Below are positions 14,336 to 21,835 of a stretch of DNA of 64,000 bases, piece by piece (positions within the stretch are counted from its first letter, which is position 1; each line of letters starts with the position of its first letter). Position numbers and translations under genes: made by a program. The DNA comes from Hemiscyllium ocellatum (lineage: Eukaryota), in assembly GCF_020745735.1 (NCBI RefSeq), contig NC_083437.1, forward strand, positions 28,520,001 through 28,584,000. Direction: 5' to 3'. The notes under the pieces were generated by a model. The model was not told where the DNA came from and searched no databases. It worked only from the letters and a program-made list of their open reading frames with translations.

Positions 14336-14462
14336 TGAAATAACTGCAGAGGCCAGTGTCTCATCACCAAGTCACCCTTTTATTTAATGTGCATAGTACA
14401 TAGGCTCTCTTCAGCAAGCCTGGAGTCAGTGCCTCAACTGAGGAGACTCTCTGAATCTCCTG
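14336..14462 (-). mobile_element. Solo LTR, 3' half (R/U5-like), split by the insertion stack
   Basis: Minus strand has AATAAA (14379-14384) and terminal TTTCA. The left flank GGTAGT recurs at 21624-21629 inside the interrupted CR1 (cagagGGTAGTgaatctgtggaatt). Confidence 0.65.
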
Positions 14463-14820
14463 CTTGTAATTTTATTTTACCACCGGGGAAAAGCAGAAAG
14501 CAGTTCACAAGAAAAAAAAACACTATATACAGGGGAAAGGGCAGCAAAGCCAAACGCCATCGTTCAACCAGTTTTCAGGGAGATGAGGAACCTCAGATCC
14601 CACTTCCATTCATCACAAAGATAACAGTAACAAACACAGACAAGACAGTGCATAGAACCCAGATCCAATATAGCTATAAAAAAGTCCTTGGCTAGCCTTC
14701 CTGCAGGACAGCTGTCGGTCTTCCAGTCTCTGGCTGCCCTGTGTACTGACTGACCCTCCCCAGCACTCTTTAATATCCCAGTTACTTTTTAAAAATTCTC
14801 TTTTCTTTTTCTTTGGGATA
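14463..14820 (-). mobile_element. Diverged 5'-truncated relative of non-coding element A (A0)
   Basis: Similarity to the 3' ends of A1/A2 (agggaaagg...gttcaaccagttttcagggagatgagg). Confidence 0.5.
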
Positions 14821-14833
14821 TCTGACACTCCGG

Positions 14834-14944
14834 CTTATTACCCCCACACGACCATCTAACTGCGGTAGTGCTTATTTTTCCCCAGCACCCATGTTAGTGT
14901 GTGCTCATGTGAGACACACAAAGTGTACAAATCTCTATTCATAT
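14834..14944 (-). mobile_element. Tx1-like LINE 3' UTR fragment (B1)
   Basis: cccccacac...ctaactgcggtagtgcttattttt matches the 3' ends of B2/B3. Confidence 0.7.
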
Positions 14945-14950
14945 CTCCTG

Positions 14951-16668
14951 TTTTTTTTCCCCAGTTTATATATTTTTATTAAACAATTCAGTTTACAAAA
15001 CAATTAGTGTTAACAGCTGTATACAAAGAAACAGCAATTTTACACGGGAAAGGAATGGCAAACTCCAGGCCCCAAACCCCACCATTCAACCATTTTTCAG
15101 GGAAATGAGGGCAAACCTCAAATCCCAGTTCCAATCATCACAAAACAGTAACAATGACAGGTACATATAAAACAAACCAATTACATAAGAAACAGTGCAT
15201 ACAATACAGACCCCCAGAAACCCCTCCCTGAGCCTCCCACCTCTACGCACCTTCCAGCCCTTCCCCATGCCCCTTCCAGTTCTCAGTCTGCCCTGACACA
15301 CCTTTCGACCACCTCTAGGACAGCCTGCCCAGGGTGACAGCACTGAGGACGGTCCAGCTGCCTTCCGGTCTGCCCCTATGTACCATCGGGTTTTCGCCCA
15401 CCCCGATGCACTGTCCGGCCCATGGACTACCCTGACACACCTTCCGGCCACCTCGAGGACAGCCCATCCTCTTCCCCAGGAAAGAAAGCGTGCAGGGCAG
15501 CCCCCAAGTCTTCCAAATCCCAGCCTGCCTCTACGCACCTTCTGGCTCTCAGCTGCTCCAACACCTTTTGACCAGCCCGTCCCGATTACCCCTTCTCGGG
15601 ACAACAGCGCTCAGAACAGTCTACCCACCTTCTGGCTCTCGGAGCGACTGGCATCGGGGTAGCCTACCCACCCTCCAGCTCTCAAGGTGACAGCTTTCAG
15701 AACTACCTATGAGCCTCCCAGCTCACAGTAAGGCCTGCGAGACCCAGGGACACACAAGACAGTGCAGGTGATAGCCCCAACAAACCACATGACAGAGTAA
15801 ATTATCAACAAACAGTCTTTTCTGGTACATAGAGTCCATTAGCATTTCTCTTCAAAATGTAAAGTTCATTCCAGGAACACAGATTCAACTTCAGTATACA
15901 AAGTGCACTGTCAGAAATGGAGTCCACTCCAAACTGCAGAGTCCGTTGCTAAAAGCAGAGTCCACAACCTAGGGCAGAGTCCACTTCCGAAGGCAGCAAA
16001 TGCACACCCCACAGCACACAGGTGTTCAATCTTCATGGAGTCCTGGCCCATCCTTGGAGAACCAGGCCCACTCATAGGAAAACAGTATATTGTAAAGGTG
16101 CAGTTAACTCACTGGTTTGGTCCATTCCAGAAGGCAAGGTCTTTTCCAAACTCCTGGATACAGCAAGTGCTCACCTCCCAGCACACACACACAGGTGGTC
16201 AGTCTTTGCAGAGGCCTAGTCCAAAGGTCAGGCTTACCAATAGGAACAGCTCATCTGGTAAGATGTATTTTCTCACAAGGACTCAGGCCAAACACCAAAA
16301 AAAGTGAAAATACATACAAAAAAAAAAGACAAAGAAAACTAGAGTCCAACGGCTAAGCCCTACCACAAATTCAATAATTGTTCTTTTCTCAAAAAAAAGT
16401 GTGACACACAAGCTGTAACCAGCCAGTGAAACAACAATCCCCTAATGAGAACTGAGTTACCCCTGAAACACTGTGCACCAGACAGTTTAGAAATCAGTCC
16501 TCACTAAAGGAATACCAGTTAACAAACTGGCTAAATAATTCAGCCAGTTTAGGAATCTGGTTTCCCCCCCAAAAAAGGAGCAAAAACCAACAGTAACAGT
16601 AACACACTGACTGTGGCTCAGCCAGCACAGAATCAGTCTCCTAAATTGAGAAGACTCTGAATCTCCTG
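14951..16668 (-). mobile_element. Non-coding poly(A) retroposon A, copy 1
   Basis: T-rich tail at left, GC-rich internal repeats, LTR-like ~70-bp end at right. Colinear with copies 2 and 3. Confidence 0.75.
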
Positions 16669-19231: not shown

Positions 19232-20968
19232 TGTGTTGCAGTTCCACATATGACAAGATAGTGACAATGACATTTGTATATTAGACAATACTGTTACATA
19301 CAGAAGTGCAGACAATACAGACTCAGCAAGCCCCTGTCCCTCCCACCTTCCAACCACGCTAAGGCAGCCCGCCTCTACCAACCTTCTGGCTCTTGGTCCA
19401 CCCTATGCCCCTTCCAGTTCTTGGTCCGCCCTGACACACCTTTCGATCACCTCTAGGACTGCCCGCCCCAAGACCCGCCCGAGGTGACAGCGGTCAGGAC
19501 GGCTGACCCACCTTCCGGCTTCACTAACCATCCTCAGCACTTTTCAACCACCTCTAGGGCAGCCCGCCCCGGTACCTGCCCAGGGTGACAGAGCTGAGGA
19601 CGGCTACCCGCCTTCTGGCTCTCTGTCTGCTCCTACGTACCATTGGGCTCTCACCCACCCTGGTGCGCCAACTGGCCAGTGGGCTATCCCAGCACACCTT
19701 CCGGCCACCTCTAGGACAGTCCGTCCGCTTCCCAGGGACGACAGCGTGCAGGGTAACCCACAAGCCTTCCGGATCTCAGCCTGCCCCTACGCGCCTTCTG
19801 GCTTTGGGCTGCTCTGACACCTTTCGACCACCTCCAGGGCAGCCCGTCCTGATTACCCCTTCTCGGGACGACAGTGCTTAGTACGGCCTACCCACCATCT
19901 GGCTCTCGGGGCGACTGGCATCAGGGTGGCCTACCCATCCCCTCCGGCTTTCAGGACAGTCTACCAACCTTCAGGTTCGCAGGATGGCTTACCCATCCTC
20001 CGGCTCTCGGGGTGACAGCTTTCAGGACAACCCATGAGCCTCCCAGCTCACAGTAAGGCCTGGTAGACCCAGGCACACGCAAGACAGTGCAGGTGATAGA
20101 CCCAGGAAACATCACAATACAGTTAATTACCAAAAAAAAAGTCCTTTCTGGTACACGGTCCAAATTTATACAGTCTTCAAAATACAGAATCCATTTCCAG
20201 GAAGAGTCCACTCCAGTATACAATGTGCATTGTCAGAAATAGAGTCCACTCCAAACTGCAGAGTCCGTTACTAATAACAGAGTCCGCAACCAAGGGCAGA
20301 GTTCACTCCTGAACGCAGCAAATGCACACCCCACAGGTGTTCAGTCTCCATGGAGTCCTGGCCCGGCCTTGGAAAACCAGGACCACTCACAGGAACACAG
20401 TATATTGTAAAGGTGCAGTTAACTCACATTGGTTTGGTCCACTCCCAAAGGAAAGGTTTTCTCCCAAACTCCAGGATACAGCAAGTGCTCACCTCCCAAC
20501 ACACACACACAGGTGTTCAATCTTCAGAGGCCCAATCCCAGGGCTAGGCCTCCCCACAGGAACAGCTCCTCTGGTAAAATGTATGTCTTCCGCAAGGGCT
20601 CAGTCCAAACACCAATACAAAGTGAAGATACAAACAAAGAAAACTAGAATCCAAAGGCTAAGCCCTACCACAAAATCATTATCCTTTTCTCAAAAAGAGT
20701 AACACACAGGCTGTAACCAGCCAGTGAAACAACAATCCCCTAATGAGAACTGAGTTACACCTGAAACACATTGTGTGCATCAGGAGTTTAACAATCAGTG
20801 CTCACTAAAGGAATGCCAGTTAACAAACTGGCTAAATAATTCAGCCAGTTCAGGAATCAGATTTTCCCCCTCCCAAAAAAAGAAGCAGAAACTAACAGTA
20901 ACATACTGACTATAACACCAGCCAGCACAGAGTCAGTCCCCTAAATTGAGAAGACTCTGGATCTCCTG
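19232..20968 (-). mobile_element. Non-coding retroposon A, copy 3 (3' end missing, fused to B2)
   Basis: Colinear with A2 from about 16860 onward, with the same LTR-like end. Confidence 0.75.
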
Positions 20969-21505
20969 TTTTTTTTTTAAACCCCCACACTACCGCCTAA
21001 CTGCGGGAGTGCTTATTTTTTTCCTCAGCACCTGTGTGTGTTGCAGGTGTGAGACACAGTGAAAGACACAAGGTGCACAAATCTTTATTCGGTTTCCACC
21101 ATCAGGAAGAAAAGAAACACCCGAGTGGCCAGTGACAAGCAGTGACATCAAAGGGCAATGCTGTGTGATCAAACAGTGAAGGGGAGGGCAGGGATTAAAT
21201 CAAAATAGAGTTGGAGGGGGAAATAATGCACTCCACTCCCTGCGACGCCCACCTCTCCCTGAACTCCAGGGTGTCGGTGGATACCGCGTGCTCCTTTTCC
21301 AGAGACACCCGGGCTCTAACGTAACCGCGGAAGAGGGGCAGGCAGTCGGCCCTAACGACCCTCTCCACGGCCCGCTGCCTGGACCTGTTTATGGCCAGTT
21401 CGGCCAGGCCCAGGAGCAGACCCACGAGGAGGTCTTCAGACCTGCCCTCCCTCCTCCATACCGGGTGCCCAAAGATCAGGAGTGTAGGACTGAAGTGCAA
21501 ACAAA
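20969..21505 (-). mobile_element. Tx1-clade LINE 3' end (B3)
   Basis: HFSPTLLIFGHP...DLLVGLLLGLAELAINRSR...LFRGYVRARVSLEKEH, with a poly-T tail at left. Closely similar to B2. Confidence 0.85.
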
Positions 21506-21513
21506 AGCAAACC

Positions 21514-21620
21514 CTCCTGTTTATATCTGTCAGCCAAGGCTCCCTGATTATCCCAGGTTAACAACCCCAATCAAGGATCTCATCATCAATAAGATCCATC
21601 TAGCCCTCATTTCAATCACA
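21514..21620 (-). mobile_element. Solo LTR, 5' half (U3-like)
   Basis: Minus strand starts TGTG, has a CCAAT element and ATATAAA (21520-21526), then CAGGAG, which continues at 14462. Confidence 0.65.
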
Positions 21621-21623
21621 TCC

Positions 21624-21835
21624 GGTAGTGAATCTGTGGAATTGTTCTGACACAGAGGGTTATCAAGGCTAGCATGTTAAGAATATTTAGAGCTGAGATT
21701 TTTAATCAGTAAGGCAATCAAGGGTTCTGGGGGAAAGGCAGAAAAGTGGTGCTGAGGATTATCAGATCAGCCATGATCTCATTGAAAGACAGACCAGACT
21801 TGATGGGTTGAAGGTCAACTTCTCATGTCTTATAT
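21624..21835 (+). mobile_element. CR1 LINE 3' end (continuation of 13060-14335)
   Basis: gtagtgaatctgtggaatt...gatcagccatgatctcattgaa...tcttat tail. Confidence 0.75.

Follow-up and report, generated by a model that had tools for sequence, protein, structure and literature searches.

Stacked LINE 3′ ends and non-coding inserts split a solo long terminal repeat behind its TATA box in a shark PHF13 intron

How did seven elements come to lie, in one orientation and at almost identical junctions, between the two halves of a single short long terminal repeat (LTR)? The question is raised by a 64-kb stretch of Hemiscyllium ocellatum NC_083437.1 (the window), in which a piece lying in an intron of the gene PHF13 was read on both strands and compared both internally and against the entire window. 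A previous interpretation made from the letters of the DNA (the sequence-only reading) had described a solo LTR split by co-oriented retrotransposon insertions, and this observation is confirmed. The inserts are seven, all sense on the minus strand: three are 3′ ends of a long interspersed nuclear element (LINE), B1–B3, which share a 3′ untranslated region (UTR), and four are non-coding elements, A0–A3, whose longest open reading frame (ORF) does not exceed 172 amino acids, so that the earlier count of both kinds stands. We consider it likely that a Tx1/L1-type LINE endonuclease prefers a site directly behind the TATA box of the LTR and that the stack grew by sequential insertions.

The LTR, element C, is 231 bp long and spans 14336–21624, split on the minus strand at ATATAAA/CAGGAG (a slash marks a junction throughout). 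Its downstream half (14336–14462, minus strand), in which the post-TATA head CAGGAGATTCAGAG... is followed by AATAAA and by the terminus ...TTTCA, is 75% identical to zebra shark L005 13602–13714, and its upstream, U3-like half (21520–21624, minus strand), ending in ...GACAGATATAAA, is 82% identical to L005 13807–13915. L005 is the PHF13 locus of the zebra shark, and there window 13709–14492 corresponds to 12941–13745 and window 21514–22539 to 13801–14852. The 7-kb stack is therefore absent from the zebra shark intron, where the halves of the LTR are separated by only 79 nt and one duplication. This near-intact copy reads TGTAGTG...CTTCA in sense, between the flanks ACTAC and ACTGC, and has CCAAT 22 nt ahead of TATAAA. 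In the window the element ends in ...TTTCA, its 5′ TG is mutated and ACTAC stands on both flanks, so that the termini and the target duplication of a solo LTR are recognizable; on the plus strand the identical pentamers GTAGT lie at 14331–14335 and 21625–21629 (GCAGT/GTAGT in the zebra shark). The signals CCAAT (intact in the zebra shark), TATAAA and, ~75 nt further on, AATAAA follow each other as in a U3-R-U5 arrangement, as far as motifs alone can tell. The TG...CA ends, CCAAT and TATAAA of the zebra shark copy, together with AATAAA, support the interpretation of element C as a solo LTR, and the proposal that removal of 14463–21519 rejoins a single such element, with its 5-bp duplication, agrees with the zebra shark ortholog. 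An alternative assignment of GATAAT as the TATA box, with CAGGAG as the U3/R border, was dropped, the zebra shark reading CCAAT at that place. Between the two sharks, ~33 nt through TATAAA (window 21520–21552 against L005 13807–13839) agree at ~32/33 positions and the next ~24 nt at 21/24, the rest of the LTR being 75–82% identical; these numbers are small. Between 114 and 164 contigs match element C over just 34 nt near its 3′ end (14347–14380) and then diverge.

The junctions carry the main evidence. On the plus strand CTCCTG is found at 14457, 14945, 16663, 18742, 20963 and 21514, and CTCCGG at 14828, exactly where the sequence-only reading had placed them; read in sense, all seven consist of an A-rich tail followed by CAGGAG, or by CCGGAG ahead of A0. 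Within the 64-kb window CTCCTGTTT occurs five times (0.98 expected), always on the plus strand and always at a junction, and the five copies of the octamer ATCTCCTG likewise all stand at junctions, while elsewhere in the stack 28 TTTA sites and 11 TTTTA sites were left unused. The CTCCTG of a junction partly belongs to the inserts, since it forms part either of the ~50-nt 5′ head of an A element or of a 6–9-nt target duplication before a truncated B. The A head is 77% identical to the post-TATA sequence of the LTR over 51–53 nt, the similarity stopping exactly at the junction in both. The truncated B copies carry a copy of the target in front of them: CAGGAG for B3 (21514–21519, minus strand; identical to the 6 nt with which the A3 head opens), CAGGAGAT for B1 (14943–14950, minus strand; ATCTCCTG on the plus strand) and CAGGAGATT for the insert of the zebra shark. 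Although their truncation points differ, B1 and B3 both have CAGGAG(AT) in front of them. A target-site duplication is what target-primed reverse transcription leaves when the second nick is staggered, and the 6–9-nt target copies before truncated B elements are read as the signature of this process. Its further hallmarks are also present in B, namely A-rich tails (A8 in B2, A10 in B3 and AATAAG in B1) and variable 5′ truncation, at three separate points. A single defined sequence of a repeated target is occupied, always in the same orientation, by all three B copies of the window, by the insert in the zebra shark LTR and by a B copy on one contig from another locus.

The last two of these lie outside the stack. 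The zebra shark insert of 79 nt is placed exactly at ATATAAA/CAGGAG and is flanked by CAGGAGATT and TAAGAGATT, with a 9-nt duplication. It aligns with B3 357–427 at a score of 34 (shuffles 16.5 ± 2.0, maximum 24), and no alignment with A0 or A1 rises above shuffles; A0 was tried as its ortholog and rejected, the similarity not being significant. The truncation point and tail of the insert are unlike those of any B copy in the window. Since its truncation and tail differ and B2 and B3 are too young to be shared with the zebra shark, the insert represents an independent strike, made in another genus on the identical base by the LINE lineage of the window copies. The contig, from the source species, reads A-type tail/CAGGAGAT/one extra base C/B truncated at the 18949 position (18949->16661), and so shares the architecture A1/CAGGAGAT/B1 with a different truncation point. 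In addition, A/T-rich tail/CAGGAGATT junctions occur by the hundreds in reads and contigs of two related species, as loose ends at 18697, 18747 and 18729, of which the counts at 18697 (1156) and 18747 (802) are inseparable from reads of head-only mini-units (see below). The core of the sequence-only reading, sense insertion at one base behind the TATA box of an LTR, is upheld by the seven junctions, the zebra shark hit and the contig from another locus.

Sequence divergence indicates how the stack was layered. The LTR is older than the split of the bamboo-shark and zebra-shark lineages. The A and B copies are younger than the LTR, since A1–A3 are pairwise 83–85% and B2 and B3 94.7% identical, against 74–84% for the surrounding intron between species. 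B2 and B3 differ by 0.6% transversions and A2 and A3, which are 85% identical, by 5.1% (Fisher p = 1e-6), and the two young B copies are joined precisely to the heads of two separate A copies of far greater age. The A copies would accordingly have come first and B2 and B3 later. A simple segmental duplication had been named in the sequence-only reading as a possible alternative. For the A-B unit, tandem duplication is rejected by the transversion contrast just given; local duplication of A1–A3 survives as an unlikely history and is taken up below.

The probable course of events starts from the old LTR, in which the target would be an A/T-run/CAGGAGAT(TCAGAG...) beginning right after TATAAA and nicked preferentially by the endonuclease of B. 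The first nick would fall on the plus strand of the window, directly after the T-run of CTCCTG(T)n, the enzyme preferring CTCCTGTTTATAT to other TTTA sites; for the substrate CTCCTGTTTATATCTG a single nick is predicted, on that strand and beside the T-run. The T-run would then prime on the poly(A) of B RNA, or on that of an A RNA borrowed in trans, and the second nick would be made ~6–9 nt into the head. The resulting duplication would leave a new A-run/CAGGAG 5′ of every insert. The A head, as a ~50-nt homologue of the post-TATA sequence, would recreate the landing site as well, which would make site regeneration twofold. Through duplication and head together the landing site would be recreated at each event, a claim of the sequence-only reading that both the 6–9-nt duplications and the homology of the A head to the LTR support. 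In A1 the head beyond its first 8 nt does not derive from a duplication, because the downstream neighbor offers only CAGGAGAT and then B1. The A head probably acts as a homology anchor, the end of the complementary DNA (cDNA) pairing with the duplicated target and giving seamless, full-length 5′ junctions.

Five observations weigh against this scheme. A TATA-driven start is expected about 25–30 nt downstream of the box, and an A RNA starting near CAGGAG would begin only 0–9 nt after it. The putative duplication of B1, CAGGAGAT, mismatches the start of A0, CCGGAGTG, at 3/8 positions. In a related species (1.9 Gb of raw reads) the read depth is about 3,400–4,000 for the B 3′ end and about 50–540 for the A body, and with B one to two orders of magnitude commoner, many of its copies may lie elsewhere. 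In the source species, 109 contigs pass from the B tail into T-runs of at least 30, which hide the flanks. Finally, A1–A3 may partly be products of local duplication, the differences among them being mostly private to one copy, as both histories predict.

This last point leads to the alternative that survives best, although we regard it as unlikely. One or two A insertions would have been followed by unequal crossing-over between the 50-nt heads, which would have made A1-A2-A3, with only the B copies and the first A inserted site-specifically. The heads are indeed direct repeats at all unit boundaries, A1–A3 are about equidistant, and of the 30 differences from the family that are best supported, 25 occur in one copy alone, as after an early duplication; the layout A2-B2/A3(−190 nt)-B3 also fits a duplication running from A190 to B472 with filler. 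However, a joint duplication of A and B is excluded by the transversion contrast, the tails of A1 and A2 differ and A0 comes from another subfamily, and local amplification would still leave at least five independent hits on the same base besides the one in the zebra shark.

A still less probable alternative dispenses with specificity altogether, the site being a generic hot spot (TTT/A) for an L1-type endonuclease in an insertion-tolerant intron. The motif CTCCTGTTT/ATAT does contain an ordinary L1-like nick site, and the inserts are antisense to PHF13, an orientation in which they are less harmful. This explanation is at odds with the unused TTTA and TTTTA sites of the stack, with the strikes on the same base in another genus and at another locus, and with the recurrence of tail/CAGGAGATT junctions in reads of related species. 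Least probable of all is the insertion of several elements at once as chimeric cDNA, produced when the reverse transcriptase, on reaching the 5′ end of an RNA, jumps to the next poly(A). Such end-to-end template jumping is well established for non-LTR reverse transcriptases, and the seamless junctions (a full 5′ end, then a T-run) and a 25-nt templated filler at the 5′ junction of B2 agree with it. On the other side, the truncated B1 and B3 have 6–8 nt of target and no RNA 5′ end in front of them, the 3′ end of A3 is missing, the site in the zebra shark is occupied by just one insert, which has a duplication of its own, and a multi-template cDNA of ~7 kb is unlikely.

Regarding the identity of the LINE that would supply the endonuclease, B2 and B3 share the end of ORF2 in addition to the 3′ UTR. 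The ORF2 end of B3 (101 amino acids) is 67–81% identical to whale shark predicted proteins (EukProt) and ~60% (58–64%) identical to ORF2 ends on two ENA contigs. The B copies of the window hold only these last 101 ORF2 codons, without the reverse transcriptase domain, and endonuclease and reverse transcriptase are known from relatives on the ENA contig L001, full-length LINEs with Exo_endo_phos and RVT_1 domains. The L001 ORF2 aligns with human L1 ORF2p (E = 4e-63, 217 bits) and, at 537 bits, with a catfish protein named by NCBI ‘transposon TX1 149 kDa protein’, to which the 101 C-terminal residues of B itself show no significant alignment (E = 0.57). From these similarities B is assigned to the L1/Tx1 superfamily of LINEs, and its membership in the Tx1 clade is likely.

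On L001, which comes from another species, three full-length LINEs of the same ORF2 lineage are arranged head to tail (3700–4500 and 10440–11130), a poly(A) of 39–45 nt meeting the 5′ UTR of the next copy (GTTTTCTTCTCAGC...) either directly or after 16 nt; head-to-tail stacking thus seems to be common in the LINE group of B. A second contig of the same sample carries at L002:3700–7100 a tandem unit of ~1.5 kb, composed of a LINE 3′ end, its tail and ~650 nt of another repeat, and this array looks like the tandem duplication of a composite, with junctions common to the units. Neither the B 3′ end nor the A head was matched in exact-pattern scans of metagenome contigs, and the flank of a metagenome LINE (L003), considered as akin to the LTR, was discarded since the similarity was not significant.

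The full-size copies of A, 1.7–2.1 kb long, are built of the 50-nt head, a unique body, several CpG-rich monomers of ~150 bp, whose number varies among A1, A2 and A3, and an AATAAA/A-rich tail. A short interspersed nuclear element (SINE) in the strict sense has a tRNA, 7SL or 5S head with an RNA polymerase III promoter and is shorter than about 500 bp; A has neither feature, its head being a homologue of the LTR target. It does have the features of a LINE-dependent non-autonomous retroposon, as it is non-coding, A-tailed and multicopy and shares the target of B: its read depth in three species is far above the expectation for an approximately single-copy sequence, and 4/4 window copies are at the site of B. 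By these features A behaves like a LINE-dependent retroposon, and it is not a classical SINE. Homology of its 3′ region, or of A0, to the 3′ UTR of B was considered and rejected as not significant against shuffles; since the 3′ end of A is unlike that of B, mobilization would run through the A-rich tail. No conserved RNA hairpin was found in the heads (Z-scores −1.4 to +0.6), and a search of 13500–22500 against Rfam gave no match above threshold, only sub-threshold mir-146-like matches inside A. The latter fall on a 5′ hairpin of A on the minus strand, at 16429–16518 (22.9 bits, E = 0.22) and 18514–18605 (21.2 bits, E = 0.69), and are probably due to chance, the gathering score being 50.

The initial ~50 nt of A (window 18697–18752) are found, too, in tandem arrays of mini-units 56–70 nt long, which consist of the head and either a ~20-nt A/T-rich tail of the A type or A5. 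The loose-end consensus found in 802–1156 reads of one related species is AATCTCCTGGTTTTATATATATTTATTAAA ahead of 18697 or GTTATATATATTTAAATACACAGCACAGAG beyond 18747. Joints that go back by 46 or 56 nt are seen in 155–293 reads of that species, and a few contigs of the source species are alike. The mini-units could be minimal retro-units or a target-derived satellite. We raise as a tentative idea that A evolved a target-mimicking head, which would rebuild the site, seal the 5′ junction and park the copy behind the promoter of an LTR. Were this so, the whole might form a self-propagating, promoter-parasitizing array of LINE and passenger, with the mini-units as its minimal form, an extension that we put forward with equal reserve.

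Along the window, the inserts follow one another on the minus strand in this order. A0 (14463–14833) is a short, diverged, non-coding retroposon of the A type that corresponds colinearly to the last ~300 nt of A1; its tail adjoins the head of the LTR and its 5′ end is CCGGAG. B1 (14834–14942) is a 109-nt, 5′-truncated LINE 3′ UTR of an older subfamily, ~77% identical to B2 and B3, and is separated by the octamer described above from A1 (14951–16668), a complete A element with head, unique body, CpG-rich monomers and AATAAA/A-rich tail. A2 (16669–18747), also complete, is 2079 nt long and has an additional internal duplication of 287 bp in its monomer region (17104–17282/17391–17569), which is recent (93% identity). 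B2 (18748–19219), whose tail adjoins the A2 head, is a 5′-truncated LINE composed of the ORF2 C-terminus, the 3′ UTR and A8, as recognized from its identity to B3 and from an ORF at 18972–19256; 1192 reads of a relative run on past 19219 as B3 does. The filler at its 5′ junction (19220–19243, ~25 nt) is a 96% copy of the B 3′ UTR at 18800–18824. A3 (19244–20968) lacks its 3′-terminal ~190 nt, probably as a target deletion from the insertion of B2. B3 (20969–21513), with its tail adjoining the A3 head, is 5′-truncated and contains the last 101 ORF2 codons (21195–21500), the 3′ UTR and A10. Self-comparison of the window revealed no further copies of A, B or C elsewhere in it.

The ORF at 21989–23584 on the plus strand corresponds to PHF13 and is 97% identical to that of Chiloscyllium plagiosum and 88% to that of Stegostoma tigrinum. 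Mapping of the zebra shark protein onto the window places the coding exons at about 5903, 10588, 21986 and 27543, and the stack therefore lies inside intron 2, as had been surmised from the DNA, and is antisense to the gene. Contigs with 0 differences, from runs of two studies of the source species, cover 14300–14549, so that the left junction is no assembly artefact. In exon 3 (22375–23400, plus strand) a Thr-Pro-rich coding repeat of 30 nt (10 amino acids) is strongly expanded: many of its repeats in the window fall on one zebra shark stretch of ~170 nt (L005 14681–14852), and the exon 3 ORF of the window has 531 amino acids, against 391 for the entire zebra shark protein.

The locus documents site-specific target-primed reverse transcription in a cartilaginous fish with unusual clarity, as a natural record in which the target, the size of the duplication, the order of events and a parallel hit can be read. 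CTCCTGTTT/ATAT is a defined short sequence with which target reading by Tx1/L1-type endonucleases may be probed, and A is a candidate passenger element bearing a copy of the target of a LINE. For annotation, head-to-tail stacks of LINEs and retroposons at short LTRs of this shark genome should be taken neither for segmental duplications nor for new composite elements.

The sequence-only reading had supposed that the pairing of LINE and partner might be undescribed, but precedents exist. Many Tx1-clade families are target-specific, and Tx1-8_Crp and Tx1-4_AMi prefer specific LTR retrotransposons; in crocodilians Tx1-Mar has SINEU partners with the same target, SINEU-3 copies standing in tandem sandwich a duplication as a result of sequential insertion, and the flanking target may drive transcription of such elements (Kojima 2015, PMC4494074). 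As in Tx1-Mar/SINEU, a LINE and a non-coding partner here share a target inside another transposon, and sequential tandem inserts sandwich a duplication. The present case differs from that system in its shark host, in its target, the base immediately behind the TATA box of an LTR, and in its partner, an SVA-like element of ~2 kb whose head copies the target and not a small nuclear RNA (snRNA); the duplication measures 6–9 nt, against 16 nt for SINEU-3. A full-text literature search, with Repbase and Dfam outside it, retrieved no description of such a system in sharks. Tx1L in Tx1D of Xenopus and Keno, Kibi and Koshi (Kojima and Fujiwara 2004; Christensen et al. 2000), as these studies are cited in PMC4494074, resemble B in being LINEs with an apurinic/apyrimidinic-type endonuclease (known for B from its relatives) that occupy a single sequence within a multicopy target, always in the same orientation. 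In those cited accounts the targets are a piggyBac-type DNA transposon, U2 snRNA genes or microsatellites, whereas here the target is an LTR promoter. For R2 and R1 in ribosomal DNA, co-transcribed target sequence at the 5′ end of the template is described, in the summary of PMC4494074, as aiding precise 5′ joining and promoter-less propagation. The role proposed here for target-derived 5′ sequence in sealing the A junctions is similar, as far as that summary goes. On the same basis, R2 has a restriction-like endonuclease and uses upstream target sequence, whereas the part shared here lies downstream of the nick and is the part that is duplicated. SVA is a composite retroposon of hominids that is mobilized in trans by L1 and has no fixed target site. 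Like A, it is about 2 kb long and non-coding, contains a variable number of tandem repeats, ends in AATAAA and an A-rich tail and is mobilized by a LINE, as A would be; the two are unrelated in sequence. Thus, the case works as published Tx1-clade behavior does and is a clear further example of it, not a new kind of system; what it adds is a shark as host, a target lying immediately behind the TATA box of an LTR, and a partner that resembles SVA, measures ~2 kb and bears a copy of this target in its head.

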